Assembly: GCA_002794465.1 (NCBI GenBank)
Contig: MTSL01000150.1
Location: 89,448-121,447 of the forward strand
Direction of reading: 5' to 3'
Source of the DNA: Paramicrosporidium saccamoebae KSL3
Lineage: Eukaryota > Fungi > Cryptomycota
Length of the DNA: 32,000 nt
A model generated the notes under the pieces. That model ran no database searches. It was not told the DNA's origin and saw only the letters and a list, made by a program, of their open reading frames with translations. Within the stretch, counting starts at the first letter, position 1. Each line of letters opens with the position of its first letter. Positions 9,484 to 31,834 of this stretch are shown here, piece by piece. The position numbers were made by a program, and so were the translations under genes.

Positions 9484-9741
9484 TGCCGCGTAGTGGGGAT
9501 AAAACCACGGACGGGAAGGGGGGTTGTTCCCTGCTAATCCTAGAATAGTATGGATGCACATGTCGCGTAGTGGGGATAAATAGTATGCATACATATCTTA
9601 CTGTCCCCAAATACCCAGCAAAGCGATCCACTCTAGCGCACAAACACGTCTCGCTGCCCTCAAATACCCAGAAACTAGGTCTTTTCCAAACTAATCAACC
9701 CTCTACGTCATATACCCAGCTAATCAATCCTCTACGCCACA
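9484..9741 (+). mobile_element. Solo-LTR-like / short TG..CA element, copy A (258 bp)
   Basis: Begins TGCCGCGTAG, ends CTACGCCACA, flanked by a perfect CTAT/CTAT (9480-9483, 9742-9745). Shares GCTAATCCTAGAA.AGTATGGAT.CACA and CTAATCAA.CCTCTA motifs with copies B-D. Confidence 0.8.
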
Positions 9742-9982
9742 CTATAATTGCCGAGAGTACTGTTAAAAACTATATAGCAACTGATCTGGAGCTTTCCTGC
9801 CAATTATTGGTTACAGAGTGAAAAGACTTTGCCTAAAGGACGATCAGTGGCCCTTCTACAATTATTTGACTGAAATGGGTACAAGTTAACAAGGGGCTAT
9901 TCTGATTTTTATTCATAAGGAAGAAGAATCCCATGTTGCAATCGTTACCCATCTATTAGTATTCTTCTCTGAACGGCATGGT

Positions 9983-11704
9983 CTAAGCGAATAGGAACAA
10001 AGCCATAATCAAGGCACCGGCGATCGCCGAAAACCCACACGGCCTCGAAGTGGCGGCATTAATATCACGGACACTATCGCTTTCAAGGGTCTTTGAGGTG
10101 CTACTTTCAGAAGTCTTTGAGGTGCTACTTTCAGAAATCTTTGAGGTGCTACCTTCAAGGATATTTGAAGTGTCACTTTCAGGAATCTTTGAAGTACCAC
10201 CTTCAAGGATCTTTGAAGTGCTATTTTCAAAGACAACCAGCTGTCCATTGACGTAGACATTACCGCCCGCGCGGAGAGCCTGGCTGGCAATGCTCTCAAT
10301 CATGCGGTCATTCTGGGCAACGCAGTCATCAGATTGATCGGCAATCTCACAGAAGATTATGGTGGTGCAAACAGCGGCCTGGCTGGTGGTTTGGGTTACA
10401 TAACTTGTGCATGGAGTGCAAATGCCCTCCTTATCGACAGGTGCTAAACCGTTAGCAGGTGCGACGCTAATTCCCGGGGTAGTTTGAGATTCTGGTGCGA
10501 TAATAGCCCCAGGTGCAACACCAGATCCTGGTGTGATAGCAGATCCCGGTTCGATACCAGCTCCAGGTGCAAAGCCAGCTTCGGGCGCAACACCAGGTCC
10601 AGGTGCGACATCTGATCCAGGTACAACACCGGATCCCGATGCAACTTCAGATCCTGGTGCGACTTCATATCCAGGATAAGCCATAACGACCTCAGTACAA
10701 GGAGCATCAAATCTAGGAGCCACGCATGGAATAGGAGAAACATAGGCTGTTGCGGTGATGTGACAAGAAGTGGCAGTGTGACAGGGCCAAATGTAAATCC
10801 AACAAGGGGTCTCATTGACAGTAGTACAGATCGTCTGTGTTTCACACCAATAGTGATGGTCACGACGATGATGTTCACAGCAATCCGTCGGGCAGTGAGG
10901 ATGTCTTGTATGCCTAGTTGTAGGGCAGATGGTGGTAGTGAAAGTCGTTCTAGACGTCACTGTCGTGGTGGTCGGCGTGGGAGTAGTAGTCGGCGTTGTT
11001 GTTGGGGCAGTAGTTTCGGTAGTTGGAGTAGTAGTCTCTGTAGTCGGAGTAGTAGTCTCTGTGGTTGGAGTAGTAGTTTCGGTAGTTGGAGTGGTAGTTT
11101 CAGTAGTCGGAGTAGTAGTTTCTGTGGTTGGAGTGGTAGTTTCTGTAGTCGGTGTGGTAGTTTCTGTGGTTGGAGTAGTAGTTTCGGTAGTTGGAGTGGT
11201 AGTCTCTGTGGTTGGAGTAGTAGTTTCAGTAGTCGGTGTGGTAGTTTCAGTAGTCGGAGTGGTAGTTTCAGTAGTCGGAGTAGTAGTTTCTGTGGTTGGA
11301 GTAGTAGTTTCTGTGGTCGGAGTGGTAGTTTCGGTAGTTGGGGTAGTAGTTTCTGTAGTCGGAGTAGTAGTTTCTGTAGTCGGAGTAGTAGTTTCTGTAG
11401 TTGGAGTGGTGGTTTCTGTGGTCGGAGTGGTAGTTTCTGTGGTCGGAGTCGTAGTTCTAGTGGGAGTAGTAGTTCTTGTAGTGGTTTCGGTGGTAACCCT
11501 AATTGGAGTGGTGGTCATTCTAGTTGTAGTAGTAGCGCCTAGCGTAGTAGTATCAGTGGTAGTCGCAGTGGTGGGGAGCGTTGTATCAAAGAAGAACCCG
11601 TTATCACTCGCTTCACTCGTGCTGATTACTGTCGTGCTGGGCGGCGGAGGGACTGACGCGGCAACTAGGCCAAGCAAACCAAGAGCAGCCGTTTTGAGCA
11701 GCAT
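9983..11704 (-). CDS. Secreted, probably GPI-anchored mucin-like Thr/Cys-rich surface protein, paralog 1 (573 aa)
   Basis: Signal peptide MLLKTAALGLLGLVAA; 21x TTTPTTE; two Cys-rich modules shared with the next two genes; C-terminal NAA + spacer + hydrophobic tail (SAIAGALIMALFLFA). Confidence 0.9.
   Translation of the reverse strand: MLLKTAALGLLGLVAASVPPPPSTTVISTSEASDNGFFFDTTLPTTATTTDTTTLGATTTTRMTTTPIRVTTETTTRTTTPTRTTTPTTETTTPTTETTTPTTETTTPTTETTTPTTETTTPTTETTTPTTETTTPTTETTTPTTETTTPTTETTTPTTETTTPTTETTTPTTETTTPTTETTTPTTETTTPTTETTTPTTETTTPTTETTTPTTETTTPTTETTTPTTETTAPTTTPTTTPTPTTTTVTSRTTFTTTICPTTRHTRHPHCPTDCCEHHRRDHHYWCETQTICTTVNETPCWIYIWPCHTATSCHITATAYVSPIPCVAPRFDAPCTEVVMAYPGYEVAPGSEVASGSGVVPGSDVAPGPGVAPEAGFAPGAGIEPGSAITPGSGVAPGAIIAPESQTTPGISVAPANGLAPVDKEGICTPCTSYVTQTTSQAAVCTTIIFCEIADQSDDCVAQNDRMIESIASQALRAGGNVYVNGQLVVFENSTSKILEGGTSKIPESDTSNILEGSTSKISESSTSKTSESSTSKTLESDSVRDINAATSRPCGFSAIAGALIMALFLFA
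10085..10228 (-). repeat. 24-bp coding tandem repeat, 6 x ExxTS(K/N)xx
   Basis: ENSTSKIL/EGGTSKIP/ESDTSNIL/EGSTSKIS/ESSTSKTS/ESSTSKTL. Confidence 0.9.
10439..10675 (-). repeat. Degenerate 18-bp coding repeat, ~13 x VAPGxG-like hexapeptide
   Basis: PGYEVAPGSEVASGSGVVPGSDVAPGPGVAPEAGFAPGAGIEPGSAITPGSGVAPGAIIAP... Confidence 0.85.
11015..11455 (-). repeat. 21-bp coding minisatellite, 21 x TTTPTTE
   Basis: Pro codons recur every 21 bp from 11024 to 11446; units differ only at synonymous positions. Confidence 0.95.
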
Positions 11705-12236
11705 CTTTAATATGGCTGAACACTGGCCTCTCCGCCTTAAAGATCAGTATTGGGTACTTCATCCCTGATGCCTCAAGAAACGCCGATTGTATTGGACCCC
11801 GTGTACTCCTCCTGCGCATAAGAATATGATTGGCCCTAGTATTCTGTAAATAATCAATTTGAAGATTGAAGTTAGTAATAAGGTCCTTTATTAGGCTCCT
11901 TGGTCCGTCCTTATACTGTTGCGTGACGGGAGTACTACCACAGTGTCAATATAAATGGGCAAGAGAGAGCTGTTTAGTATCGGCTGGTATGAATGTAATG
12001 GCATAGTGTCCAGGCGTTGGGGAGGCAACCTTTCCCTCCCTCGACTCTGGGTCTCCTTTCCATATTTGGACAACTACCTTACAATACTATCTCACGGATA
12101 CCCAATACTTGATGTAGCACACAATTACACCAAGCTTCCTAAAACTAGAAGAGAGATATTTTTATTCAGATTCTAACATTTCTATGTTTCAATCGTAGAG
12201 AGAGGGAATTCGCAATGCAATTCTTCGTCCAGGCAT

Positions 12237-12923
12237 CTAGAAGAAGAGGAGACAGCCCATAATGGCAGCAATTGCAATCGGGACGCCTTGATTCGTCGCC
12301 GCAGCATCGTTGGCATCCTGTCCAGAGACACTTCCGGTACTGGCAGTACTGCTACTGCTACCGCTGGCAAAGACGACCATCTGTCCATTAACATAGACGT
12401 TACCGCCTGAGCGGAGGGCCTCTGAGGCGATTTCCTCAATCAAACGGTTGTTTTGGGCAACACAATTCTCAGACTGGTCTACAATGTCGCAAAAGATCAT
12501 TGTGGTGCAGACGGCTGGAGGATTGACAGTCTGGGTAACGTAGCTGGTGCATGGCACACAGGCGGGGGCAACAGCAGAGGTAGGTGCGACATAGGCGGTA
12601 GAGGTGATAAAGCTGGTGGTGGCGGTGGGGCACGGCCAGACGTAGAGCCAGCATGGCGTGTTGTTGATCGTGGTACAGATAGTCTTGGTATGGTAGTGAT
12701 GGTGGTGATGCTCAGTGCATTTGCTGGGACAGTAACTAGTCGAGGAGGGACATACGGTAGTTGTCAAAGTCGTCGGAGTGTCCACTGTGGTAGTCACTGT
12801 TGTGGGGGTGGTAGTGGGGGTTGTAGTATCGGTGGTGGTAGTGTCAGTTGTGGTGGTGGTGGTGGTGTTAGTGGTCGTTTGAGCCGCTACAAGGGCAACC
12901 AGGAAAAGACTTTTTAACAACAT
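12237..12923 (-). CDS. Secreted, probably GPI-anchored Thr/Cys-rich surface protein, paralog 2 (228 aa)
   Basis: Signal MLLKSLFLVALVAA; Thr tract; CTEHHHHHYHTKTICTTINNTPCWLYVWPCP; CVPCTSYVTQT..AVCTTMIFCDIVDQSENC..ALRSGGNVYVNGQ; hydrophobic C-terminus. Confidence 0.9.
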   Translation of the reverse strand: MLLKSLFLVALVAAQTTTNTTTTTTTDTTTTDTTTPTTTPTTVTTTVDTPTTLTTTVCPSSTSYCPSKCTEHHHHHYHTKTICTTINNTPCWLYVWPCPTATTSFITSTAYVAPTSAVAPACVPCTSYVTQTVNPPAVCTTMIFCDIVDQSENCVAQNNRLIEEIASEALRSGGNVYVNGQMVVFASGSSSSTASTGSVSGQDANDAAATNQGVPIAIAAIMGCLLFF

Positions 12924-12956
12924 GTCAGAGGTGTGGTGTCACATGCGTGTCCACGC

Positions 12957-12963
12957 TTATATA
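12957..12963 (-). promoter_or_regulatory. Candidate TATA box of surface-protein paralog 2
   Basis: TATATAA on the minus strand about 34-40 bp upstream of the ATG; paralog 3 has a TATA element at the same spacing. Confidence 0.5.
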
Positions 12964-13153
12964 TTATCTCCTTCCCCGAGTCTCCTTTCCCCTGATACAA
13001 TATCATGCTAAAAATAGACGCTACAATGGGGATTATGGGAGCCAATCAGAACACGCATGACAATAAATTTCGAGAGAGATTTAAACTTTATTTCTAAGGG
13101 CTCGAACATTGAGAGAGGGTTAAGTTAGGGTATCCAGAGATCAGTCGACTCGC

Positions 13154-13909
13154 TTAAAGCAAGAAGAGCATACCAACAAGGGCAGCGGCGGAACCAGCAA
13201 GCACATTCATGAGACTTCCTGGGGCAGCGTTGGCATCCAAGCCAGTGATGGTGGCTACAGTGCTTCCACTGATCACAGAGGTGGAGGCAGAGACAGAGGT
13301 GGAGGCGGATGCGGAGACTTCAAAGACAACACGTTGTCCATTGATAAAGACATTTCCACCGGAACGGAGGGCACGGCTGGCAATGCTTTCAATAAGACGG
13401 TTGTTGTGGGCAATGCAGTTGTCAGTCTGGTCAGCAACATCACAGAAGATCATGGTGGTGCAGACAGCAGGCGGGTTGACAGTCTGGGTAACGTAGCTGG
13501 TGCATGGCACACAGACGGGGGCAGCAGCAGCAGCGGGGGCAACAGCAGAGGTAGGTGCTACCTGAGCAGAGGCGGGGGCGACATAGGCAGTCGAGGTGAC
13601 AAAGACGGTGGTGTTTGTGGGGCATGGGCACACATACAACCAGCACGGGGTCTTGTCGATCGTGGTGCAGATTGTCTTGGTCTCACAGCACTCCTTCTTG
13701 GTGTGGCAGTGGCTGCTTTGATGACAACGGCTGGTATCACGGCAACGGCTGGTCTCGCACTCTGAGCTCCAGCGGCATTGGCTCGAGGTTGGAGAACAGA
13801 ACGTGGTGGTATAGGTCGTGGGAGTCGGTATGGTCACCGTCACAGTGGAGACTGAAGCGGCGCTGAGGCCGAGAAAAGCAGCAACGGACAGGAGATTTTT
13901 GAAGATCAT
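13154..13909 (-). CDS. Secreted, probably GPI-anchored Thr/Cys-rich surface protein, paralog 3 (251 aa)
   Basis: Signal MIFKNLLSVAAFLGLSAA; the same two Cys-rich modules plus an extra Cys-rich stretch; C-terminal NAA + hydrophobic tail. Confidence 0.9.
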   Translation of the reverse strand: MIFKNLLSVAAFLGLSAASVSTVTVTIPTPTTYTTTFCSPTSSQCRWSSECETSRCRDTSRCHQSSHCHTKKECCETKTICTTIDKTPCWLYVCPCPTNTTVFVTSTAYVAPASAQVAPTSAVAPAAAAAPVCVPCTSYVTQTVNPPAVCTTMIFCDVADQTDNCIAHNNRLIESIASRALRSGGNVFINGQRVVFEVSASASTSVSASTSVISGSTVATITGLDANAAPGSLMNVLAGSAAALVGMLFLL

Positions 13910-13943
13910 CTTGTGTCTTTATTCCACCTCGACCAAAGGCCTC

Positions 13944-13950
13944 TTTTATA
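13944..13950 (-). promoter_or_regulatory. Candidate TATA box of surface-protein paralog 3
   Basis: TATAAAA on the minus strand 35-41 bp upstream of ATG 13909. Confidence 0.55.
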
Positions 13951-14297
13951 GATGGGCGGCTCCGGGTCGCCCCTCCTCTCCGGTTTTGTTGTTATTTTAG
14001 GTATGATCAGCTACAGGGACAGGGGTTATCGGCCATAATTCGTGTTTACATGATCCGTTACTATTCTCGGCCTGACCTATCACGGAGTGCCACAGGCTAT
14101 TTTTGGTATCAGACCGTTAGTCCGCCTGATGGTAAGATTGTTAGCCAAGCGCTTTTAATCCGCTCCATTTTGGATAGGTGCGAGTAGTTTAGAGTGTAAA
14201 GCTGTAAATGGGATCTTTTAGATTGCCACATGTCAGTCTAGAGTTCTGTAAATATGCTATAATGATGTTCAGATGTGGAGATGCCGAGTTACTATGC

Positions 14298-14380
14298 CAC
14301 TAATACACTTTTCCACTGATATACTCTTTCACTAATACACTCATTCACTAATACACTCTTTCACTAATATATTCTTTCAC
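14298..14380. repeat. 16-bp intergenic minisatellite, ~5.2 x CACTAATACACTCTTT
   Basis: Units start at 14298, 14314, 14330, 14346 and 14362, each with 0-2 substitutions; the array ends 11 bp from the SPB4 stop codon. Confidence 0.92.
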
Positions 14381-14391
14381 AGATAAAAGCT

Positions 14392-16095
14392 TTATTCTAG
14401 CAATTTGTTCTGTTTCTTCAGCCGCTTGTATTCACGCCAATCCTCATCCAGCTCTTCCATGTTGATTTTATTGGTCGCCGTCCGATTACCTTCAATGACT
14501 CGTTTCTCGGCCCTCTCAAAGTAATCACCCGTCTTTTCTTTCTTTGCCGGCCGCTCACCAGTGGACTTTCGCAATTTGAGGGCTTCAAATGAAATCTGAC
14601 GCTGCTGGTTTCGCAGCGGGTCTTTGAATTTGATGTCGGCCGTGTTGATCTTGCTCTCCTCAAAGTCTGTCACATTGATCCCTTTGAGCTCTTTCATTTT
14701 TGGCAGGCGCAAAAGTCCAAATGACTTGGCAACACTGGCAATGTTGAGGTCCTTTACTCTAAAAATGAACTTTGTTTGATGTTCCTGGTAGAATCGCACA
14801 AATGCAACAAATGCCTTGACGCTCTAGAATATCAATTGACCAATAATATGGGGGCCTACTCTTTCTAGCAAATCACGATCTGTAATGTTCAGCTCTCGTA
14901 GCGCCTCGAATAATGAATTAGTAGTCGGGGTCTTTTCCGCTTCTACAAGAGGGACCTTTCGATTGGATAGAAACTCAATGTATGCATCTTCACTTTCACT
15001 TAATAGTAGGAGCGCTTCCCCGTCTCTCCCGCTCCTCGCCGTGCGGCCGCAGCGATGGACAAAGGTCGTGGGGTCCTGAGGAGCTTCATACTGCAATACC
15101 AATTCTACATCGGCGAAATCCAGTCCACGAGCCGCCAGATCTGTACAAATAAGGACTGCGCGCTCTGAGGTAATGTAGTCTTGATAAATCCTTTGCCGTT
15201 TCTTGTGATCCATTTTGCCATGGAGGGCACATATCTTGGGAACGTCTTGCAGCAGTTTTGCAGGGAGAAGTGGAAGGACCCTGCCGAAATACTCTACGGC
15301 CGCACATGTTCCAAAATATACTATGCTTTTCTTGGCAGGATGTGCACGGAGATGCTCTAGGATAAAGAAAAGTCGGTGCTCATATTCACAAATGACATAT
15401 GATGATTTTAGCGACTCGGGTGTCTTTTGCTCCTCCTTTGTCGTTAAATTCTCTACCTTGACAGTCACTTTTACAGGATTCCTCAGTCCGGTCCTGATGA
15501 GTTGAGAGAGCGCATCGGACATTGTTGCAGAGAACAGTCCAGTCCTACGTTGCTTTGGAAGGCGTTCCAAGATGGAGTTGATAGTCTTTTCAAAGCCGAG
15601 GTTAAGGAGACGATCCGCCTCGTCAAGGACCAAGACTTCCAGAGACCTCACATCAATCATGGAGCTGTTCCTCTCCAACACGTCCAGCAGTCTTCCAGGA
15701 GTGGCAACAATAATGTTGCATCCTCCTTGCTGAAGATTTTTGAGATCATGCGCAACATCTGTCCCGCCGATAAGCGTCGCCTGTCGCAGGTCAGTTCTCT
15801 CTTTCAACAGCTCATTTAGTACGTTGCGCGTCTGCAAGGCTAGTTCTCTGGTTGGAGAGATGATAATAGCACCCACCTGGTGCTGCGGAATGGGCCGGGC
15901 GAGTATCTCCACGATGGGAATCAGAAAGGCGAGCGTCTTCCCAGACCCAGTGACGGCCTCCACTACGACATCTTTGTGGGATAGGAAGAGCGGGATGGAA
16001 GATGCCTGGACTGGTGTGGGCTTGTTAAAACCAAGTCTCTTTATGGTTGCATACGTGGTGTCACAAAGTTTCGTCTTTTCAAGCTCCCAGGTCAT
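14392..16095 (-). CDS. SPB4: DEAD-box RNA helicase Spb4 (DDX55), ~555 aa, 1 intron
   Basis: PTPVQ, AVTGSGKT, SPTRELA, TPGRL, LVLDEADRLL, FSAT and HRCGRTARSG. Intron 14824-14859 (36 nt) joins LLER to SVKAFVAFVRFY, followed by the C-terminal VAKSFGLLRLPKMKEL typical of Spb4. Confidence 0.93.
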
Positions 16096-16200
16096 TTCCC
16101 AGTTGCTGGGGTATCATCACCTGGGAAGGATTATCTACTAAATGCAGTATATATATCAAAGACAGTATTCTACATGATTTGATACAACTGCTAGTTCTAT

Positions 16201-16427
16201 TACCACGTAGTAGGAATTATACGACGGACCTTGCCAGGTGGGAAGAGACGAGACGAGATGAGACAAAACAAGACAAGACAAGACAAGACAAGACAAGACA
16301 AGACAAGACAAGACAAGACAAGACGAGACGAGATGAAACGAAAACTTGTTCACTGCTAATCCTAGAACAGTATGGATACACATCTCACTGTCCTTAAATA
16401 CTCAGCTAATCAACCCTCTAAATCACA
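16201..16427 (+). mobile_element. Solo-LTR-like element, copy B (227 bp, degenerate, contains a microsatellite)
   Basis: Starts TACCACGTAGTAGG (degenerate TGCCGCGTAG), contains CTGCTAATCCTAGAACAGTATGGATACACATCTCACTG and ends CTCTAAATCACA. TSD unclear (CTAT/CTGC). Confidence 0.65.
16246..16345. repeat. Pentanucleotide microsatellite (AGACA)n with AGACG/AGATG variants
   Basis: About 20 pentamers, with 10 perfect AGACA at 16271-16320. Confidence 0.97.
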
Positions 16428-16584
16428 CTGCTAGTCAGCTCCGAGACTCTTTGACGTGAACTGAGGCAAGCAACGGGGTTTCAAACCTACCAGGCTTCTT
16501 GGCATGATCCTATACACCAAACAGCACCATTGGTTGTCTCGGAGATGACATCCCATTTTCTCATAATATGATACAAAAGATGCT

Positions 16585-17193
16585 TTATTGGCCGCCTTCG
16601 GGACGGTTCGGCATGAATTTTTTCTGCTTTGATGCCTTCCTCTTTCTCTTCTTTTCGATAAACTTTTCAATATTTGCATCCTCCCCCAGTCTCCGCTTGA
16701 CTCGCTCAAATTCTTCCGCAATCTCAAGATGCTTCATGTCACCTCGTTTCAGGTAATACGGAGTCTTTCCCTGTTCCACCAATTTTGCGTCTAATTTTCG
16801 ATGTTCCCTAACCAACTTTTGTCGTTGTTCCTTTCTCTCTTTGGTCTTGTGCATCGAGTTCATGCGCTCGATAGTCTGTTTGATGGCAAATTTGCGGTGC
16901 GGGTTTTTTTCATTTCTGAGCGACTCGTGCAGCTTTTGCTTCTCATCCTTCTGGATATCACCAATAAAACCGTACGTCTTGCTGAAGAGATCTTCGTTGA
17001 AATGGCCAAAGGCGCGGTCGAAGCGAGGATCTATGGCTTTCTAGCGCTATGAATATCAAGCAACAGTATACCTTTCTGACAACGGGAACAACTTCCCTCA
17101 GCACTGATACGGGTCGTTTTGAGGACACCTCTGTGGGACTATAATAATAAGCACAACCACAATAAAATACGCATTCTTGTGCTCTCGAACCAT
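16585..17193 (-). CDS. RRP36: rRNA biogenesis protein Rrp36, ~181 aa, 2 introns
   Basis: Exons 17193-17171, 17138-17072 and 17040-16585; introns 17139-17170 (32 nt) and 17041-17071 (31 nt). HKNAPTEVSSKRPVS, DPRFD..GHFNEDLFSKTYGFI, GKTPYYLK and IEKKRKR. An alternative in-frame ATG lies at 17244. Confidence 0.88.
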
Positions 17194-17290
17194 TTGGAGG
17201 TGCAGTGCGACCCCGGCCGAGTTGACAAGTGGAATAGCGACCATTCACTCGTTTCCCTTTGAGAGACCTTGCAACCCCCATTTCCCCGAT

Positions 17291-21199: not shown

Positions 21200-21410
21200 A
21201 TTGCACGTCGCTTCCAGGATTAAATCCTCAACAATATATATAATCCACCAGCCGCCATCTATTTGACAAAGATGTTTTCCAGATTCAATTAGATAGTCTA
21301 ATATCAAGCGCCATAGGTTATCTGGTGCACTGAACTTTATTCTGATCGGCCTACTTACATAAGCTTGTCCTTCAGGTTGAAGGGCTGAACCCTGACCAGG
21401 GGGTCGCCTG

Positions 21411-22817
21411 ATGATCTTCTGGGCTCTTGTTTTTGGACTGTGCAAATGTTCCGTCTCAAATCCCACGTGGCTCTATCGAAGCGAGAGCTACGAAGAGAAC
21501 TGGTCCGTTGAAAGTGTATTCCCAGGACTCTATACCACAGATGGCGATGGTGCGTCAACACTCACAGTACCTCCTCATGCAGTGGAGATGGTCTCTATAT
21601 ATCCTCGGGACGAGGGTCTCCAAGAGCTTCGCAAATCTCTCCTTACAGATGATCTGCCTTACTTTTATGCTTATGAAGGTGCAGGTTTTAACCTTTCTTC
21701 AGATGAAATATACCAAGTGAAGTGGTCCCATGTACCACTTTCGAAAAGTGTCCCGCGACAGGCACCATTAGAATCCTTGCAGAGAGTTTCACCGGTTCCA
21801 AATCCCACAATGATGACGCCTACTGTTGAAGTACCTGATATTATATCACCTGTCGGTCCAGTGAACGCTATTTTGGCGCCCAGCGCCAAGTTGCCGGACA
21901 CTAGGCACCTGGAACACGAGCAACCAGATCAAGATCCTGGACACCGTTCTGTTCAATCGAATCTGGTTACCAACAGGCCACACGAGCATCCGAGTCAAGT
22001 AAGGACGTTTGGTGTACCGATTGTCGGTCTAAAATCAAGGTTGACTACACTGTCTCTGCCTCTTAATCCGCAATTGGCGACTAAACCCGTTGCTAACCGA
22101 TTAACAAGCACATCAAATCAGCCAGTGCTTAAGAGACCAGTAAACCGCGCGGTTTGGTTTAAGAGCGGCGCAAACCGAAAGTTTTCCTCTTACAAAGTCC
22201 CGAGAAAGAAGACTCCGCCGGCTTTATTCTCTCAGCGTCATATGTATGGAGTGGCAGAGCCCGCTATGAGAGCCACCTCCATGGTAAGCACAATGAGAGC
22301 CATGGGTTTCCGAATCAATCATAGTCGAATGGTATTTTTCGATGGCTATAAGATGGGTAACGAAGTGGAGAAGGGTAGCAAAGCGGAGAAGAACCAGTTA
22401 CTTGCCTCAAATTGGTCAACTTGTGCTTTAAATACGACCTATTTGCAGGCTGGAAATCTCAAGCAGATGTCTCCATTAGAGACGGATGGTCTTGTTATCG
22501 CCTTTCATACGGGTAGTAATTATAGTCGTCAGTTGCTTATGGCATCCCATGGCCGACCTCCACTGGGAGCAATTGTCCTTCGTCCTAAAGGAGATTGGCT
22601 AGTGGTTGTGGATCGTACGTCGGATGATACCGTCAGGGCCGTAGATATTCAGAATGGCGATGTTGTCATTGTTGGACCACTTTTGGGGATTTCAAGCGTA
22701 GAGTCTGGTCTTATCCTACTAAGCACTTCAGACGCACCACAAATACTCGCCGAAATAGTCTACAACGCTGCTGCAAGGCCCTCACTCTGTGTTGCCGCCA
22801 CCATTACCGCTTGCTAA
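21411..22817 (+). CDS. Secreted family paralog P2: signal + header + single PP2C-like repeat (468 aa)
   Basis: Same N-terminus; only the first (a-type, GFRINHSRMVFFDG) repeat is present. Confidence 0.85.
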   Translation: MIFWALVFGLCKCSVSNPTWLYRSESYEENWSVESVFPGLYTTDGDGASTLTVPPHAVEMVSIYPRDEGLQELRKSLLTDDLPYFYAYEGAGFNLSSDEIYQVKWSHVPLSKSVPRQAPLESLQRVSPVPNPTMMTPTVEVPDIISPVGPVNAILAPSAKLPDTRHLEHEQPDQDPGHRSVQSNLVTNRPHEHPSQVRTFGVPIVGLKSRLTTLSLPLNPQLATKPVANRLTSTSNQPVLKRPVNRAVWFKSGANRKFSSYKVPRKKTPPALFSQRHMYGVAEPAMRATSMVSTMRAMGFRINHSRMVFFDGYKMGNEVEKGSKAEKNQLLASNWSTCALNTTYLQAGNLKQMSPLETDGLVIAFHTGSNYSRQLLMASHGRPPLGAIVLRPKGDWLVVVDRTSDDTVRAVDIQNGDVVIVGPLLGISSVESGLILLSTSDAPQILAEIVYNAAARPSLCVAATITAC

Positions 22818-22867
22818 CGATCGTTTGAATAAAACTGCTTTTGCCGTCCTTAGATCGTTGATAGGTG

Positions 22868-23121
22868 TGTGACGTAGATTGATTGGTCGGGCACTTGGAA
22901 ATATGGGGATACATTTGTGTGATAAAGCGGACTGATTAACTGAGTGTTTGAGGACAGTGAGATGTGCATCCATACTATTCTAGGATTAGCAATGAACAGG
23001 TTTCCGCACGACTTGGGTCGTGGTATCATCCCCACTACGCGGCATGTGCATCCATAATATTCTAGGATTAGCAGTGAACAACCCCCCTTCCCGTCTGTGG
23101 TATTATCCCCACTATGCGACA
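22868..23121 (-). mobile_element. Solo-LTR-like element, copy C (254 bp)
   Basis: Minus-strand ends TGTCGCATAG ... CTACGTCACA; perfect GGTG/GGTG flanks (22864-22867, 23122-23125). It interrupts a spacer that is uninterrupted after the other paralogs. Confidence 0.85.
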
Positions 23122-23355
23122 GGTGGATGCTTGAATTTAACGTTCCTCTCAGGACCAAATCACCGGTGGCGGCAGATATAACGTATACAATTCAACAGCC
23201 GCCCTTTATTTGATAATCTTGTACGCGCTGCATGGAATGGGCATTATAAGATATTTAGCGCGTACTAAATTTTATTCTGCTCGGATTATTCACGTAGGCT
23301 CGTCCGCTCAAATTGGGTGATTGAATCGGTCCGAATTCTGACCAGGGAGTATGGC

Positions 23356-25674
23356 ATGATCGTTTTCTGGGCTCTTATTGTCGGACTGTGCAAGTGCTCT
23401 TCCTCAAAGCCCACATGGCTTCACCGAATTGAGAGGAGCGAGGAGAACTGGTCTATTGACAACGTGTTTCCAGGACTGTATACTACAAATGAGGACGGTT
23501 TGTCAGAACTCTTAGTGCCTCCTCGTGCATTGGAACTGTCTCTTGCGCATCGCCCGGCTGAGTGCCATCAAGAGTTCCACTACTCTCTCCTTTCAGATGA
23601 CCCACCTTACTTTTGTGCTTATGAAGGAGTAGATTTTAATCTCTCTTCTGATGAGGTCTATCAAGTAAAGTGGTCCCAGATGCCACGTTCAAAAAGTGCC
23701 TCGCGACAGGAGTCATTGGAATCATCGCAGGCAGTTGCACAAACTCCAATGTCCACGATTGTGGCGTCTGCTGTCGAAGCGCCTGATGTTCCACCGCCTG
23801 CCGATCCGGTAAACACTCTCCCGCCACCCATTGGCAACGTGTCTGACATCAAGCACCTGGAACGCGATCTCAATTGCCGTCCTGGTCAGCCGAAACAGGC
23901 TATAAGCAGGCCATGCGAGCGCTTGAATCAAACAAGGAGGTTGAGTGCGCCGATTACCGGTCTAGACTCGAAGATGACTACCCTGTTGTCCTCCACAGCA
24001 AATACTGTAGTGGCGCAGCCGCCATCTTTCAATGCACAATCAACGACCAGACCCGATATTCACCGATCGGTGGACGCAGCACATCGGTCAGTACCTGAGA
24101 GATCAGAGAGCCGTGTAGTTTGGTTTGAGGAGGGTGTAGAGCAAAGCTTTTCCTCTCCGAATTCTTCGGTAGATAAAAGTTCACGTGTTTTCTTCCCCCA
24201 GTACCACATATATGGAGTGGCACTGCCCAATATGAGAACCGCCTTGTTGGGAGGCAAATATGCGGCCATGGGTTATCGAATTAGTCATAAGCGAATGTTA
24301 TTTTTAGATGGTTACAAGAGAACAAAGAAAGCGAAGCAGAGTCAGGTCGACGACGCCAATCGGCCAAGGCGTGTTTTCAGTGAGGCCACTTTGCGGACTG
24401 AAGATTTTAAATGGACATTGCTACTCCAGACGGATGGTCTTGTTGTTGCTCTTCAGGAGGATGATGGTAGTGATCACAAGTTGCTTATGGCATCCTATGG
24501 CAGACCTCCATTGGGAGCAATTCTGCTCCGTCCTAAGGGAGGTTGGCTAGTGCCTATGACTCGTACGTCTGATGATACCGTCAAGACTGTAAAGATTCAG
24601 AATGGGGACGTTGTTGTTGTTGGGCCATTTCTTGGAATATCAAACTTGGAATCGGGTCTTCTCCTACTAAGCACTTTGGACACACTGGACATGATCGCCG
24701 AAACTGTCTACAACTCTGCAGCAGAGCCTTCGCTTTGCGTTGTCGCGACCATTTCCGTTTCGCAGAATTCACTCAAAAAAATCAAGTTTATATCTAGCAG
24801 ATGGGAAGAATCTTCTAAAAGAGCCTCTCCCAGTGCCATCTCATCTCCTCAAGCCACGCATCACGGACAGTCTTCCCCTCATAGCAACGTCCAAAGAGAC
24901 AATGAGCCGCAATCATCCTCACCCGTGACATCCAGAACGATGGCAAAACCCTCTACCAAGCATCTCCCCCCTACATCCCCGGAAATCTTTAATGGTACAA
25001 AAGTTAAAGAGTCGGCAGGACGGGCGAACTGGTTTCCCAGATTTCTGCCACTCTGTTATTTATCCCAAACTACCACGCAGAATACCATGGTGCCGATTTC
25101 TTTTGCTCAGTGGTATTACTATGGAACGTTAACGCCCTTGAAGGCGCGCCTCCCTGGACTATCCATCGCCAATACGAGTATGGGCGGCGAGGTTGCTCAC
25201 ACACGAATCGCGTTTTTAGATGGTTTCAATTCCAGTGTTGGATGGAGGCAGACCTTTCGCGATCGCTGGAAAAAGGGCATTATTAATGAAACTACTTTGA
25301 GGGCTGAAAGGATCAGGGATTTGCTTCCCCTCAAGAAGGATGGTCTTATTTTTGCTCTCAAAGAGGGTAGTAGTAGGGATCATCGGTTGCTTATGGCATC
25401 ATATGGCAGACCTCCATTGGGAGCAATTCTTTTCCGACCTGAAAGAGATCGGCTAGTTTTCATGGCTCGTACGTCTGATGATACTATTACATCCGTAAGG
25501 ATCCAGAATGGTGATGTTGTTATTATTGGATCGCTTTTGAGGATATCAAGCTTAGAATCAGGTCGTTTCCTACCAAGTAGCTTAGACCAACCGGATATGA
25601 TTGCCAAAACAGTCTGTGGCACTATAAGTGAGCCCTCGGTTTGTCTTGTCGCCATCATTGCGGTTAAACAATAA
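23356..25674 (+). CDS. Secreted family paralog P3: signal + header + 2 PP2C-like repeats (~772 aa)
   Basis: Intronless; homologous ATG at 23356 (MIVFWALIVGLCKCSSS). Confidence 0.85.
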   Translation: MIVFWALIVGLCKCSSSKPTWLHRIERSEENWSIDNVFPGLYTTNEDGLSELLVPPRALELSLAHRPAECHQEFHYSLLSDDPPYFCAYEGVDFNLSSDEVYQVKWSQMPRSKSASRQESLESSQAVAQTPMSTIVASAVEAPDVPPPADPVNTLPPPIGNVSDIKHLERDLNCRPGQPKQAISRPCERLNQTRRLSAPITGLDSKMTTLLSSTANTVVAQPPSFNAQSTTRPDIHRSVDAAHRSVPERSESRVVWFEEGVEQSFSSPNSSVDKSSRVFFPQYHIYGVALPNMRTALLGGKYAAMGYRISHKRMLFLDGYKRTKKAKQSQVDDANRPRRVFSEATLRTEDFKWTLLLQTDGLVVALQEDDGSDHKLLMASYGRPPLGAILLRPKGGWLVPMTRTSDDTVKTVKIQNGDVVVVGPFLGISNLESGLLLLSTLDTLDMIAETVYNSAAEPSLCVVATISVSQNSLKKIKFISSRWEESSKRASPSAISSPQATHHGQSSPHSNVQRDNEPQSSSPVTSRTMAKPSTKHLPPTSPEIFNGTKVKESAGRANWFPRFLPLCYLSQTTTQNTMVPISFAQWYYYGTLTPLKARLPGLSIANTSMGGEVAHTRIAFLDGFNSSVGWRQTFRDRWKKGIINETTLRAERIRDLLPLKKDGLIFALKEGSSRDHRLLMASYGRPPLGAILFRPERDRLVFMARTSDDTITSVRIQNGDVVIIGSLLRISSLESGRFLPSSLDQPDMIAKTVCGTISEPSVCLVAIIAVKQ

Positions 25675-25954
25675 CTATCTAAATGAATTGAGCTTTTGTC
25701 AATCTACTGACCGCCGATCTGTGATAAGCGTATGCTTTGAATTGCACGTTGATTCCAACATCAAGCCTTCAGCAGTCGCCATCTACTCGATGAAGGACAC
25801 TTGCCAGATTCAAGTAGATAGTCTATCACACACTGCATTAATCGGACGCTGTAAAATAGCTGGTATATTAGATTCGACTGGGCTTGGCTCATCCACGTAA
25901 ACTCGTCCGCCCCAGTTGGGTAATTGAACCTGAATCATGACCAGGGGCTGCCTG

Positions 25955-28303
25955 ATGATCTTGCTCTGGGCTCTTGTTTTTGGACTGTGCAGATGCTCAT
26001 TCTCAAATCCCACATGGCTCTACCGAAGCGAGAGCAGTGAAGAGAGCTGGTCTGTTGACAATGTGTTTCCAGGACTATATGCTACACATGAAGATGGGTC
26101 GTCAACACTCGTAGTACCTCCCCATTCAGTAGAGATGACTTTTGCATACCTTCCGGATGAGAATCCTCAAGAGCTTTGCAAATCCCTCCTTGCATATGAT
26201 CCGCCTTGCCTTGCTGCTTATGAAGGAGCTGATTTCAACCTTCCTCCAGATGAGGTCTATCAAGTAAAGTGGTCTCAGGCGCCGCTGTCAAAAAGTGTCT
26301 TACGACGGGCACCGGTAGAAACACTATACATGGGTGCAAAGACCCCTGTTTCCACGATTGTGACGTCTGTTGTTGAAGCACCTGATGTTCCACCACCTGC
26401 TGACCCAGTAAACACTCTCCTGCCACCCATTGGCGACGTATCTGGCATCGAGCTTCTAGAGGACAAACAACTGGATCAAGATCCCAAAAGCCATTCTGTT
26501 CAGTCGAAGCAGGCTATAAGCAGTCCACGCGAGCATTCAAACCAAATAAGAACGTTTGGTATGCCGATTGTTGGTCTAAATTCAAGAGTGGCCACACCTC
26601 TTTCACCTATAGTAAACACTGTAGTGCCGCAACCACCACATTCCAATCCGCTAATGATGACTAGACCGGTTGTTCACCGACCGACGGCCTCATCAAATCA
26701 TTCAATGCCCGAGGGAACGGAGAACCGTGCAGTTTGGTTTGAGGATGGTGTAGAAAAAGAATCTTCCTCTGCCGATTTTTCGATAGATGAGAATCCACAA
26801 ATTTCCTTTTCTAAATACCATATGTATGGAGTGGCGCTGCCCAATACGAGTGCCACCTTCATGATGGGCAAATATGTGGCCATGGGTTACCGGATTAATC
26901 ATGACCGAATGGTATTTTTAGATGGCTACAAGAGGAAGAGGGAATCGAATCAAGGTCGAGTCAGCGATCTAAATTGGTCAAAGTATATTGTCAATGAAGC
27001 CACTTTGCGGGCCGAAAACGTTAAACCGATATATCCGCTCGAGACAGATGGTCTTATTGTTGCTCTTCAGGAGGGCAGTGATATTGATAGTGATAGTCAT
27101 GACAAGTTGCTTCTGGCATCTTATGGCAGACCTCCATTGAGAGCAGCCCTTCTTCGTCCTGGAGGAAATGGGCTAGTCGTTGTGGCCCATACGTCTGATG
27201 ATACTGTCAAGACTGTAAGGATTCGGGATGGAGATTTTGTTATTGTTGGGCCACTTCTCGGAGTATCAAACTTGGAATCGGGTCTTCTTCTACTAAGCAC
27301 TTTGGACACACCGGCCGTGATTGCCAAAACTGTTTGCAACTCTGTAACAGAGCCCTCACTTTGCATTGTCGCTACTATTTCCATATCGCAGAATTTATCG
27401 TCACAATTCAAGTTTGTGTCTGATGGACCGGAAGAATCTTCCAAAAGAACCCTCCCCGGTGCTTGCTCACCTCCTCAAGCCGTGCATCACGAACAATTTG
27501 TCCCTAATAGCAATCACCAAAGAGACAATGAGCCGCGGCCTCCCATATCTGTGACATCCAGGACAATGGAAGGACCATCCGCCAAGGATTTCATCCTTAC
27601 ATCTCCAGGAATGTTTAACGTCACAACACCTGGAATGCTAGCAGAACGAGCGAACTGGTTTGCCAGAGCTAGGAACCTTTATTCTTCATCCCAACCCACT
27701 ATGCAGGATAACATGCTACCAGTTACCTTTGCTCAGTGGCACTACTACGGTGTGTTAGCGCCGCCAAAGAATAAGCGAGCTAACCTATCCATCGCCAATT
27801 CGATTATGGGTGGCCAAAGTTCCCACGACCGAATTGTGTTTTTAGATGGCTGCCAAACCGAATCTAAATGGAAACAGACCTTTGAGAGTCGCTGGGAAGA
27901 TGGTGATATTAATGCAACCTCCTTGGGGGTTGAAAAGGTCAGAGACTTGTATCCACTCGAGAAGGATGGCATTATTGTTGCTCTTCAGGAAGGTGGTGAT
28001 GATGGTAGTGGTCATCAATTGCATATGGCGTCTCATGGCAGACCTCCGCTGGGAGCAGCTCTTCTCCGACCTGAAGGAGATCGACTAGTGTTTGTGGCCC
28101 GCACTTCTGATGATACTGTTATATCCGTAAAAATTCAGGCTGATGATGTTGTTATTATTGGACCACTTCCTGAGATATTAGCCTTGGGATCAGGTGCTCT
28201 TGTGCTAAGCACTTTAGACAATCCAGATAAGATTCTCAAAACAGTCTATGGTACGGATAAGAAGCGGTCGCTTTGTTTTGCCACCATGATTGCCGTTAAG
28301 TAA
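25955..28303 (+). CDS. Secreted family paralog P4: signal + header + 2 PP2C-like repeats (~782 aa)
   Basis: Intronless; homologous ATG at 25955 (MILLWALVFGLCRCSFS); an upstream in-frame ATG lies at 25937. Confidence 0.85.
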   Translation: MILLWALVFGLCRCSFSNPTWLYRSESSEESWSVDNVFPGLYATHEDGSSTLVVPPHSVEMTFAYLPDENPQELCKSLLAYDPPCLAAYEGADFNLPPDEVYQVKWSQAPLSKSVLRRAPVETLYMGAKTPVSTIVTSVVEAPDVPPPADPVNTLLPPIGDVSGIELLEDKQLDQDPKSHSVQSKQAISSPREHSNQIRTFGMPIVGLNSRVATPLSPIVNTVVPQPPHSNPLMMTRPVVHRPTASSNHSMPEGTENRAVWFEDGVEKESSSADFSIDENPQISFSKYHMYGVALPNTSATFMMGKYVAMGYRINHDRMVFLDGYKRKRESNQGRVSDLNWSKYIVNEATLRAENVKPIYPLETDGLIVALQEGSDIDSDSHDKLLLASYGRPPLRAALLRPGGNGLVVVAHTSDDTVKTVRIRDGDFVIVGPLLGVSNLESGLLLLSTLDTPAVIAKTVCNSVTEPSLCIVATISISQNLSSQFKFVSDGPEESSKRTLPGACSPPQAVHHEQFVPNSNHQRDNEPRPPISVTSRTMEGPSAKDFILTSPGMFNVTTPGMLAERANWFARARNLYSSSQPTMQDNMLPVTFAQWHYYGVLAPPKNKRANLSIANSIMGGQSSHDRIVFLDGCQTESKWKQTFESRWEDGDINATSLGVEKVRDLYPLEKDGIIVALQEGGDDGSGHQLHMASHGRPPLGAALLRPEGDRLVFVARTSDDTVISVKIQADDVVIIGPLPEILALGSGALVLSTLDNPDKILKTVYGTDKKRSLCFATMIAVK

Positions 28304-28590
28304 CAACTATCTAAATGAAATAAGCTTCTATCGATCTACTATTTTTAATGGGCAGATGCTTTGAATCGCACGTCGCCTCCAGAATCAAAAACAGCAACAG
28401 TGAATTTGAGGTAATAATGGTGAGTGCAGTGTGTATAGTGTAATAGCCTTTATAAATTCGAAAAAGGACATGTGTTAGATTCAGCTAGATAGTCTAATAC
28501 CGAGTGCCATAGGATATTCAATATATTTAATTATATTCTACTCAGCTCGAGTGGGATAATTGAATCTGAATACTGGTCAGGGGCCGTCTG

Positions 28591-30978
28591 ATGATCTTAC
28601 TCTGGGTTCTTGTTTTTGGACTGTGCAGATGCTCATTCTCAAATCCCACATGGCTCTACCGAAGCGAGAGCAGTGAAGAGAGCTGGTCTGTTGACAATGT
28701 GTTTCCAGGACTATATGCTACACATGAAGATGGGTCGTCAACACTCGCAGTACCTCCCCATGCAGTAGAGATGACTTTTGCGTATCGCCCGGATGAGAAT
28801 CGTCAAGAGTCTTGCAAATCTCTCCTTACAGACGATTCGCCTTACTTTACTGCTTATGAGGGAACAGATTTCAACCTTCCTTCAGATGAGGTCTATCAAG
28901 TAAAGTGGTCTCAGGCGCCACTGTCAAAAAGCGCCTCACGACAGGCACCGTTAGAATCATTGAAGAGAGTTGCACCGACGCCAATGTCCAAGATTGCAAC
29001 GCCTGTTGTTGAAGTAGTTGCTATCCCAACACCAATTGCTCCAGCGGACACTATTTCGGAGCTCATCGTCAAGTTGCCTGACAACAAGCACATGGACAAC
29101 GAGCAACGGGAGCAAGATACCAAAAGCCATTCTGTTCAGTCGGAGCAGACTATAAGCGGTTCACACGAGCATTTGAGCCAAGTAGGGTCGTTTGGTGCGC
29201 CGATTACTGGTCCAAAATCAGGAGGAAATACGCTGTTGGCGCCTATAGCAAGCACTGTAATGGCACAACCACCACATTCCAATCCAGAATCAAGTACCAG
29301 ACCTGTTATTCACCAACTGGCAGATTCATCAAGGCAGCCAACGCCTGAGAGATCAGAAAGCCGTGTACTTTGGTTTGGGGATGGTATGAAAGAAGCACCT
29401 TCCTTTAACAATTTTTCGATATATAAGAATTCACAAATTTCCTTCTCCAAATATCATATGTATGGAGTGGCACTGCCCAATTCAAGAACCACCTTCATGA
29501 AGGGCAAATATGTGGCCATGGGTTACCGAATTAATCACGACCGGATGGTATTTTTAGATGGCTACAAGAGGAAGAGGGAAACGAAGCAAGATCGGGTTGG
29601 CGATCTAACTTGGTCGAATTATATTGTCAATGAAGCCACTTTGCGGGCTGGAAACGTTAAACAGATATATCCGCTCGAGACAGATGGTCTTATTGTTGCT
29701 CTTCAGGAGGGTAGTGATATTGATAGTGATAGTTATGACAAGTTGCTTCTGGCATCTTATGGCAGACCTCCATTGAGAGCAGCCCTTCTTCGTCCTGGAG
29801 GAAATGGGCTAGTCGTTGTGGCCCATACGTCTGATGATACTGTCAAGGCCGTAAAGATTCAGAATGGGGACGTTGTTATTGTTGGACCATTTCTCGGAAT
29901 ATCAAACTTGGAGTCGGGTCTTCTCCTACTAAGCACTTTGGACACACTGGACATGATCGCTGAAACTGTTTACAACTCTGCAGAAGAGCCTTCGCTTTGT
30001 ATTGTCGCTACTATTTCTGTTTCGCGAAATCCATCATCAATATTCAATTTTGTGTCTAATGGACCGGAAGAATCTTCCAAAAGAACCCTCCCGGGTGCTT
30101 GCTCGCCTCCTCAAGCCGTGTATCACAAGCAATCCTCTTCCCATAGCAATTTCCAAAGGGGCGATGAGCCGCGACTACCCCCGCCTGTGGCATCCAACAT
30201 GATGGTAAGACCATACGCCAGACAGCCCCTCCCTGCATTTCCGGCAACCTTTAATGCCGCAAAATCTAGAGAGCCATCGGGACGAGCGAAATGGTTTGCT
30301 AGAGCTAGACAGTTTTATTCTTTATCCCAAATCGCCACAGTGAAAACCGTACCACCAGTTGGATTTGCTCAATGGCACTATTACGGAGTGTTAGCCCCTC
30401 TCAAGGGTAGGTTTGCTAGATTATCCATCGCCGATTCTAGTATGGGTGGCCACATTTCCCATAACCGAATTGTATTTTCAGATGGTTGCCAGGCCGGCGC
30501 TAGATGGAAGAAGACCTTTATGAATCGCTGGAAAAATAGTGATATTGATGAAACCACTTTGGGGGCTGAGAAAGTTAGAGACTGGTATCCCCTCAAGGAG
30601 GACGGCCTTATTGTTGCTCTTCAGGAGGATGGCGATAGTGGTAGTGATCACCAGCTGCTTATGGCATCCCATGGCAGGCCTCCACTAGGAGCAGTTCTTC
30701 TCCGACCTGAAGGAGATCGGCTAGTGTTTGTGGCTCGTACTTCTGATGATAAGGTTACGCCCGTAAAGATTCAGGATGGTGATGTTGTTATTGTTGGGGC
30801 ACTTTTGAGTATATCAAGACTGGAATCAGGTGATCTCGTGCTAAGCACTTTGAGCACGCCAGATACGATCCCTGAAACGGTCTATGACTCTGCAAAGGAA
30901 CCTTCGCTTTGCTTTGCTGCCGTCATTGCGGTTAGCCAACAATTATCTAAATGGAATGAGCTTCTGCCAAGCTACTAA
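28591..30978 (+). CDS. Secreted family paralog P5: signal + header + 2 PP2C-like repeats (795 aa), mosaic
   Basis: Intronless; MILLWVLVFGLCRCSFS; segments nearly identical to P4, P1 and P3 in turn. Confidence 0.85.
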   Translation: MILLWVLVFGLCRCSFSNPTWLYRSESSEESWSVDNVFPGLYATHEDGSSTLAVPPHAVEMTFAYRPDENRQESCKSLLTDDSPYFTAYEGTDFNLPSDEVYQVKWSQAPLSKSASRQAPLESLKRVAPTPMSKIATPVVEVVAIPTPIAPADTISELIVKLPDNKHMDNEQREQDTKSHSVQSEQTISGSHEHLSQVGSFGAPITGPKSGGNTLLAPIASTVMAQPPHSNPESSTRPVIHQLADSSRQPTPERSESRVLWFGDGMKEAPSFNNFSIYKNSQISFSKYHMYGVALPNSRTTFMKGKYVAMGYRINHDRMVFLDGYKRKRETKQDRVGDLTWSNYIVNEATLRAGNVKQIYPLETDGLIVALQEGSDIDSDSYDKLLLASYGRPPLRAALLRPGGNGLVVVAHTSDDTVKAVKIQNGDVVIVGPFLGISNLESGLLLLSTLDTLDMIAETVYNSAEEPSLCIVATISVSRNPSSIFNFVSNGPEESSKRTLPGACSPPQAVYHKQSSSHSNFQRGDEPRLPPPVASNMMVRPYARQPLPAFPATFNAAKSREPSGRAKWFARARQFYSLSQIATVKTVPPVGFAQWHYYGVLAPLKGRFARLSIADSSMGGHISHNRIVFSDGCQAGARWKKTFMNRWKNSDIDETTLGAEKVRDWYPLKEDGLIVALQEDGDSGSDHQLLMASHGRPPLGAVLLRPEGDRLVFVARTSDDKVTPVKIQDGDVVIVGALLSISRLESGDLVLSTLSTPDTIPETVYDSAKEPSLCFAAVIAVSQQLSKWNELLPSY

Positions 30979-31510
30979 CTTTAATGTGCGGATGCTTTGA
31001 ACATCATGTTGCTCTCAGGATTAAATCCTCAACCGTAAGCTTGGGAGGAGGAGTAAAAACCGCAGATGCAGTGTATGTGGTGCAATAGCCGTTACATATT
31101 CGACAAAGGGCACTTGCCAGATTCAATTCGAAAATCTCGTACAGAGTGAATTGGTCGAGCGTTCTAAGGCATTTGTTACACTGCAACTGTCTAGTGGCAC
31201 ACAACTGCATCACTTCTGCCTCAATAACAAATTTGAATTGTCCATCCAGGGATCATACAAGATTTGACGATTGAGGGAGTTGTATTAAAGACCATATTAA
31301 ACAGCATTTGTTTGTTATTGGCAAGCCCGATCCATATAGCGACCCCACAATCCATCCCTGTCATCTTAAGGATAGCTGCCCATAAAGGATCCACAAGCTC
31401 CACTACAACCAATTCACTCATCAACAGGCTCTTTATTGGAAATTTGAGCCGCGGGTCTATACTCTTAACCTGTGTAAACCCTCTCCCTGGTCCATATATA
31501 TGATGGCATA

Positions 31511-31752
31511 TGTCGCGTAGTAGGGGATAAATAGTATGGACTGTCAGCGGGAAAGGGGGGTCTGTTTATTGCTAATCCTAGAATGGTATGAATACACATC
31601 TCACTATCCCCAAATGTTCAGCAAAGCGATCCATTCTAGCACACAAATACCCAATTAATCAACCCTCTATGTCACATGGCCAACTAATCAATCCCTTGCC
31701 TCTACGTCACGTAGCCAACTAATCAATCCTCTGCCTCTGCCTCTACGTCACA
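31511..31752 (+). mobile_element. Solo-LTR-like element, copy D (242 bp)
   Basis: TGTCGCGTAG ... CTACGTCACA; flanks CATA/TATA (1 mismatch); 3' module present three times. Confidence 0.8.
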
Positions 31753-31834
31753 TATACATGGACCAGGAATATAGTCTCTCTCACAGGCCATTATTTACAT
31801 TGTATTCATCTCTTTGAGTCAATATTTACAAAGT

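Follow-up and report, generated by a model that had tools for sequence, protein, structure and literature searches.

The window analysed here, 32,000 nucleotides of the genome of the fungus Paramicrosporidium saccamoebae KSL3, a parasite of amoebae (assembly GCA_002794465.1, contig MTSL01000150.1, positions 89,448 to 121,447), carries a dispersed family of non-coding elements. Four copies lie in the window, 227-258 bp long and 69-86% identical to one another, and a fifth, more diverged copy lies 8.7 kb past the window's right edge. We are confident that these copies are mobile-element insertions. TGT...ACA ends, when combined with short imperfect inverted repeats and a duplication of a fixed 4 bp, are the footprint of a retroviral-type DDE integrase. 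The copies bear this signature, as the initial annotation had proposed: their TG/TA..CA ends fit TGTNR, and the target-site duplication (TSD) has a fixed length of 4 bp. Their mobility is further backed by a paralogous empty site for one copy, by the TSD that was predicted for the fifth copy and found there, and by the absence of the element from syntenic relatives. What the copies are is a harder question. Probably, they are old solo long terminal repeats (LTRs) of a Ty3/gypsy-like LTR retrotransposon that is extinct or unassembled.

The genomic DNA on which these statements rest amounts to 46 kb (L001, the window and L010) of a genome of ~7.3 Mb. Beyond the window it takes in 5.2 kb on the left, without a copy, and 9 kb on the right, which was reached via the fused gene model P0126 and which holds the fifth copy.

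The copies and their ends

Copy A (9484-9741, + strand, 258 bp) runs from TGCCGCGTAG to CTACGCCACA, and copy B (16201-16427, + strand, 227 bp) from TACCACGTAG to CTAAATCACA. Copy C (22868-23121, - strand, 254 bp) runs from TGTCGCATAG to CTACGTCACA when read on its own strand, and copy D (31511-31752, + strand, 242 bp) from TGTCGCGTAG to CTACGTCACA. All four had been placed at these coordinates and on these strands by the initial annotation, and repeat search, blastn and nhmmer agree with it. In the repeat search, A and C pair along 94 nt (93% identity), B and C along 90 nt (86%), and C and D along 87 nt (79%); sensitive blastn and an nhmmer profile found no further copy in the window. Copy E (L010 31596-31802, which is window coordinate 40494-40700, + strand, 207 bp) begins with TATCGCGTAG, ends with CTACGTCACA, and is matched by the profile from end to end, its interior strongly diverged and its ends conserved. 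The family had been said to have no open reading frame (ORF), and indeed no reading frame is conserved across the copies, the one stop-free frame in C being due to chance.

From A to E, the gaps between successive copies are 6.7, 6.7, 8.6 and 9.0 kb, and the five copies make up 2.6% of the 46 kb, the leftmost 14.7 kb of which is free of them. Were this density to hold genome-wide, it would exceed the 0.53% of repeats reported for the genome, so that the copies either form a local cluster or belong to a family that has been under-detected. Pairwise Kimura two-parameter (K2P) distances among the copies are 0.10-0.30, comparable to or above the ~20% nucleotide divergence that separates P. saccamoebae from its relative L002, and the insertions must therefore be old. 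A search with the core pattern TGCTAATCCTAGAANNKTATGNATNCACAT gave 0 matches in JGI metagenome contigs, GTDB genome contigs and IMG/VR, and the pattern of the 3' unit described below gave 0 matches in JGI metagenome contigs, these being collections that do not hold this genome.

Several short sequences define the family. An invariant 14-mer core, TGCTAATCCTAGAA, occurs five times (twice in C) versus 0.01 occurrences expected. CTACGYCACA occurs three times versus 0.10 expected, in each case at the 3' end of a copy (A, C and D). TGYCGCRTAGTRGGG occurs five times versus 0.27 expected, three of the occurrences being at a 5' end (A, C and D) and the other two at the internal duplicated module of A and C. 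The consensus ends are TGTCGCG...CGTCACA. The proposal of TG..CA ends with short imperfect terminal inverted repeats (TIRs) stands in full for the 3' dinucleotide, which is CA in 5/5 copies, and in part for the 5' dinucleotide, which is TG in A, C and D but is changed by a single transition to TA in B and E. The 5' pentamer is TGTCG in C, in D and in the inner module of A, and the outer end of A reads TGCCG. The inverted match between the termini amounts to 5-9 of 12 nt, the remainder of the element being asymmetric.

The element opens with a 5' module of ~77 nt (TGYCGCGTAGTGGGGATAAWACCACGGACGGGAAGGGGGGTTGTTCACTGCTAATCCTAGAATAGTATGGATGCACA), present once or twice. A short middle part follows, and then a 3' unit of 30-35 nt (AAATACCCAGCTAATCAAYCCTCTACGTCACA) that is present one to four times. 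Because the 5' modules begin with TG, and because both they and the 3' units end in CACA, the terminal motifs recur internally at either end of the element. Copy A carries the 5' module in tandem, full at 9484-9560 and internally deleted in the second repeat, which starts at 9561; it has three to four 3' units, the last at 9715-9741. Copy C has two full tandem 5' modules (23121-23045 and 23044-22963), and copy D a single module with four 3' units. In copy B the single 5' module is broken by an (AAGAC)n/(GAGAC)n microsatellite, detected by the repeat search and expanded within the copy (16246-16343, + strand), and no 3' unit beyond the first is present. In both A and C, but not in B, D or E, the 77-bp module is duplicated in tandem, the identity between A and C being 93% over 94 nt. 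Since the flanks of the copies are unrelated, this subfamily pattern points to a succession of master copies and not to local duplication. AATAAA is present in none of the copies, and the one conserved AT-rich box (GATAAWA/GTATAATA) lies at positions ~15-22. The strand label that we use is arbitrary and the true orientation uncertain; if it is in fact reversed, the variable 30-35-nt units would fall on the 5' (U3) side, the usual site of tandem repeats in LTRs.

Target-site duplications and the empty site of copy C

Flank comparison places CTAT on both sides of copy A, at 9480-9483 and 9742-9745. Copy C is bordered by GGTG on the + strand, at 22864-22867, where paralogous spacers as well as flank comparison identify it, and again at 23122-23125 (CACC/CACC on the element strand). 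The flanks of copy D, CATA/TATA, match at three of four positions, and those of copy B, CTAT/CTGC, at two of four, which leaves B with no clean TSD. Each of these flanks, the unclear pair of B included, is as it had been described at the outset. Copy E has a perfect 4-bp duplication, CATA/CATA, located exactly where the consensus ends of the family had placed it. How often would such matches arise by chance? At random intervals of the same length, a single perfect 4-bp match has P=0.006. For the window copies, perfect TSDs in at least two of four have P=2e-4, and with E included, perfect TSDs at the homology-defined ends of at least three of five have P=2e-6. The left flanks of 5/5 copies read C-W-N-N, a possible target preference, with n=5.

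Copy C lies in a spacer of an array of five paralogous genes, and alignment of the spacers reveals no other large insertion. When C and one GGTG are deleted, the remaining sequence aligns without gaps across the junction with spacers S3, S4 and S5. This paralogous empty site indicates that the insertion of C is younger than the duplications that produced the array, the units of which are now 55-61% identical as proteins.

Copies B and D have sites with features of their own. The 9-mer ACTGCTAGT, at 16187-16195 and 16427-16435, brackets B at a distance of 5 bp (TCTAT) from its 5' end. At random intervals such an arrangement has P about 0.005, and it suggests for B an insertion or repair history unlike that of the other copies. 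B may be a short variant for which the first 3' unit served as the end and whose TSD has since been lost; alternatively, a repair-type event may have brought it to this site. Copy D is bracketed by a palindrome of 17 nt, 94% complementary and unique in the window (31486-31502 and 31751-31767). As reconstructed, the empty site of D is a hairpin whose stem measures 14 bp. It lies between convergent genes, ~70-100 bp beyond the stop codon of Mito_carr, and the palindrome is a target-site feature older than the insertion.

Solo LTRs and the competing explanations

What sort of element has left such copies? Solo LTRs are recognised by TG...CA termini with short imperfect inverted repeats, which are present here, and by a TSD of fixed length, 4-6 bp, abutting both ends, which is present at 4 bp. 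Among Ty3/gypsy LTRs, integrase-recognition motifs include CNTNACA in Sushi, CGTNACA in rGmr1, and TGTYANR at the 5' end (PMC3601003). The 3' CGTCACA of the present family conforms to both 3' motifs, and the 5' TGTCGCG is one position off TGTYANR; in addition, the consensus 5' TGTCG and the reverse-complemented 3' ends, TGTGA/TGTGG, fit TGTNR. Like Ty3/gypsy (Metaviridae) LTRs, the copies combine TG..CA short inverted repeats and a 3' CGTCACA with tandem repeats inside. Tandem sub-repeats are common in the U3 of LTRs (PMC3601003), and the variable sub-repeats of this family, one to four units of 30-35 bp, count in favour of an LTR. The likeness is one of 7-nt motifs only, and unlike Ty3/gypsy LTRs the copies have no AATAAA, no assignable U3/R/U5 and no associated gag-pol, primer-binding site (PBS) or polypurine tract (PPT).

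There is a precedent in Yarrowia lipolytica, where the orphan solo-LTR families LTRyl1 and LTRyl7-9 are 244-444 bp long and no full-length parent has been found (PMC5014426). The P. saccamoebae copies resemble them in being non-coding and dispersed between genes, in having LTR-type ends and flanking target duplications, and in lacking a parent. The resemblance lies in these general features. The host differs, being a member of the Rozellomycota, as do the 4-bp TSD, the variation in sub-repeat number at both ends, and the much greater divergence of the present copies (K2P 0.10-0.30).

Both TSD copies are retained, and the flanks contain no PBS- or PPT-like sequence. Taken together with the non-coding length of 207-258 bp, this points to a remnant of LTR-LTR recombination. 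We infer an integrase mechanism, an LTR identity, a solo-LTR recombination and a fate for the parent element along the following lines, the LTR identity being drawn from end motifs, size, TSD and precedent. A retroviral-type (DDE) integrase would have recognised the short, imperfectly inverted TGT...ACA ends of a full-length Ty3/gypsy-like LTR retrotransposon and would have cut the target with a 4-bp stagger, the repair of which would have produced the 4-bp duplication as the element became integrated. Later, recombination between the two LTRs would have removed the coding interior, so that a single LTR stayed behind, flanked by the original duplications. The parent may be extinct in this reduced genome, or it may be absent from an assembly that was binned from a metagenome by ESOM and coverage, a procedure in which contigs of high copy number or atypical coverage may have been lost.

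A number of observations weigh against solo LTRs. The 46 kb contain neither a full-length element nor any recognisable remnant of gag-pol, a PBS or a PPT, and the genome paper, which reports the 0.53% of repeats, makes no mention of transposons. U3-R-U5 boundaries cannot be drawn, and the orientation is uncertain, because AATAAA is lacking and the only candidate signal is a weak ATAAWA box near the 5' end. The internally repeated terminal motifs, with the 5' module present up to twice and the 3' unit one to four times, resemble the transposase-binding repeats that certain DNA transposons have in sub-terminal positions. Copy B has no clean TSD, its bracketing 9-mer being offset by 5 bp instead. 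In fungal Ty3/gypsy elements, moreover, the TSD is more usually 5 bp than 4 bp. Tyl3 is an example with a 5-bp TSD (PMC5014426).

Could the copies instead be non-autonomous, cut-and-paste DNA elements, comparable to miniature inverted-repeat transposable elements (MITEs), that were moved in trans by an integrase-related DDE transposase, either Ginger-like or of an undescribed kind? We regard this, the main rival of the solo-LTR reading, as unlikely, though it has several attractions. TGTNR ends and 4-bp TSDs are common to Ginger1/2 and Gypsy LTRs (PMC2836005), and the present family has both, as do the Ginger1/Ginger2 (TDD) elements. A 12-nt terminal motif, TGTSRCGTAGWG, has one or two direct occurrences at one end of the element and between one and four inverted occurrences at the opposite end. 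The strongest argument for a DNA element is this recurrence of the end motif inside the element on either side; the repeated motifs would then be multiple transposase-binding sites. No retroelement gene is seen nearby, and among the TSDs CTAT, CACC and CATA, the AT-rich CTAT and CATA recall the Ginger2 target, two to three of the sites being loosely RTATAY-like. Ginger1 and Ginger2 are characterised by TGTNR termini, 4-bp TSDs, TIRs of 40-270 bp, and CCGG/CCGT (Ginger1) or RTATAY (Ginger2) targets, and have been described mainly from animals and Dictyostelium, with one fungal vestige (PMC2836005). In place of such TIRs the copies have 5-9 matching nucleotides among the terminal 12 and are otherwise asymmetric, and their TSDs are not CCGG/CCGT. 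They have no foldback potential, the folding z scores against dinucleotide shuffles being -0.44 for A, -0.04 for D and +1.05 for C, and no transposase is seen in the 46 kb. A Ginger-type origin, one of those initially suggested, is accordingly disfavoured, as the long TIRs that define the group are absent. Weak TIRs and the lack of fold-back (z about 0) also led us to reject a generic MITE.

A related idea, to which we assign a low probability, is that the copies are miniature elements moved as such by integrase-type enzymes, having short LTR-like ends and arrays of the end motif on both sides, and not being the relics of any recombination. Such elements would cluster at lineage-specific arrays of genes for secreted or wall proteins and would provide neighbouring genes with ACGTCA-type regulatory sites. 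If true, a non-autonomous, integrase-dependent element of a new kind would be present in a lineage that branches near the root of the Microsporidia.

We give slightly less credence to a self-propagating non-autonomous retroelement, either similar to terminal-repeat retrotransposons in miniature (TRIMs) or large retrotransposon derivatives (LARDs), or an LTR-only unit both copied and integrated in trans. The two head-to-tail 5' modules of A and C, each with a TG start and a CACA end, the conserved termini and diverged interior of copy E, and the existence of subfamilies are what one might expect of such an element. The TRIM layout is nevertheless absent, as the modules of A and C abut without an interior, PBS or PPT, and the 3' end is unrelated to the 5' module. 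To our knowledge, there is no mechanism for the reverse transcription of an LTR alone.

Finally, a host sequence that is not a transposon at all, such as a regulatory module or a non-coding RNA (ncRNA) gene spread by duplication or gene conversion, is very improbable and has been largely refuted. Three copies do lie ~90-235 bp upstream of start codons, and the repeated ACGTCA-containing units could conceivably bind a bZIP-type factor. Such an origin does not account for fixed 4-bp duplications at exact ends, for the precise insertion of C relative to paralogous spacers, for the location of D and E between convergent gene ends, or for absence at the syntenic positions of the relatives L003/L006. 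The initial annotation had asked whether the copies might be a structured ncRNA at orthologous sites. Rfam has no hit at the gathering score anywhere in the window, nor, in the surroundings of copy A, any at E<=1, the copies are missing from the syntenic sites, and their folding energies equal those of shuffled sequences, which excludes structured RNA as well as a foldback MITE. ARAGORN found nothing, and a tRNA-derived short interspersed element (SINE) was rejected for want of a tRNA-like part. Segmental duplication was rejected as a source of the copies given their unrelated flanks and exact ends, as was a composite element bounded by B and D, between which lie conserved host genes that are syntenic in L003.

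Genomic setting, relatives and neighbouring genes

All five copies are intergenic. Copy A precedes the Utp14 start by 90-125 bp, and copy B lies 105 bp upstream of the start of a DEAD-box (SPB4-type) helicase gene and 157 bp downstream of the RRP36 stop. Copy C occupies the spacer that separates array unit 2, whose stop it follows by 50 bp, from unit 3, whose ATG it precedes by 234 bp (235 coordinate positions). Copy D lies beyond the Mito_carr stop codon (31835-31837), from which its 3' end is separated by 82 bp (83 coordinate positions). As D and E are both situated between convergent gene ends, targeting of promoters was rejected as an explanation for the distribution. The genome is compact, as had been supposed, with 76% gene space according to the P. 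saccamoebae genome paper. The supplements of that paper list no reverse transcriptase or integrase entries, and we found no literature on transposable elements in P. saccamoebae.

Relatives of P. saccamoebae are represented in public read sets and metagenomes by L002 (Logan SRR16214429), by L003/L006 (a single relative, Logan runs SRR28640811 and SRR28640813) and by L011 (JGI 3300042203), and should be useful for presence/absence tests of the element. L003/L006 is syntenic with the window on both sides of A, B and D, with Utp14, the wall-protein genes, the DEAD helicase, the ortholog of a 283-aa ORF, and Mito_carr all in place. The element is not detectable in the syntenic intergenic regions of L003/L006, nor in 51 kb of DNA that represents at least five related organisms. 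At the sites of A and B, the intergenic DNA has diverged too far in L003 for alignment; the element is absent there, and the spacer lengths are compatible with this. L002, at 80% nucleotide identity, spans no insertion site, and L007-L009, on the side of NOP2 (P0001), a gene of the window, end before the site of copy A. The ~80% identity of L002 extends over window 12316-13771 and includes intergenic DNA. In a more distant relative, with a GC content of 57-58%, gene order around the window is conserved.

What might these copies tell us about the history of the lineage? The clear insertion signatures of the family show that integrase-type mobile elements were active in the P. saccamoebae lineage after its genome became compact. 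The copies are younger than the local expansion of the gene array and absent from a syntenic relative. The family bears on when and how transposons were lost on the branch leading to the Microsporidia, and it offers a practical presence/absence marker between Paramicrosporidium isolates. In kind the finding is unsurprising, orphan solo LTRs being well known in compact fungal genomes. It also exposes problems in the annotation of the record, where copy C falls within an 'intron' (22416-23298) of a fused 2,569-aa gene model.

That model, P0126, is a single annotated gene made from the array, and its 'introns' cut parts out of each unit. The array itself (18899-30978) consists of five tandem paralogous ORFs of ~770-795 aa, one of which is truncated to 468 aa. 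The units have a signal-peptide-like N-terminus, an internal two-fold domain duplication and no Pfam match, and a search of 1.84 billion representative proteins turned up only 38 relatives. The syntenic L003 lacks the 13-kb array block in its entirety, and there the ortholog of the 283-aa ORF is 77 bp from Mito_carr.

To the left, window 9983-13909 holds three adjacent Thr-rich, Cys-patterned genes (573, 228 and 251 aa) with a signal peptide and a hydrophobic C-terminus; from their sequences, the products look like wall or surface proteins. Only five homologs were found in 5.8 billion proteins, all of them on Logan, ENA or JGI contigs. The 573-aa gene contains ~30 tandem 21-bp repeats (TTPTTET, 10872-11600) and, in its 3' part, a 24-bp sequence repeated in tandem six times (10080-10247). 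A 16-bp sequence, likewise repeated six times (14282-14401), overlaps the 3' end of the helicase gene. Outside the window, at L010 24565-25727 (window ~33463-34625), two ORFs read as two exons of an AGC/PKA-like protein kinase, with the motifs GTGSFGRV, YRDLKPENIL, DFGFAK and GTPDYLAPE, for which the locus gene table has no gene. The kinase ORFs are followed, at L010 25760-25900, by a (GTGAGTAGGGAA)n-like minisatellite.

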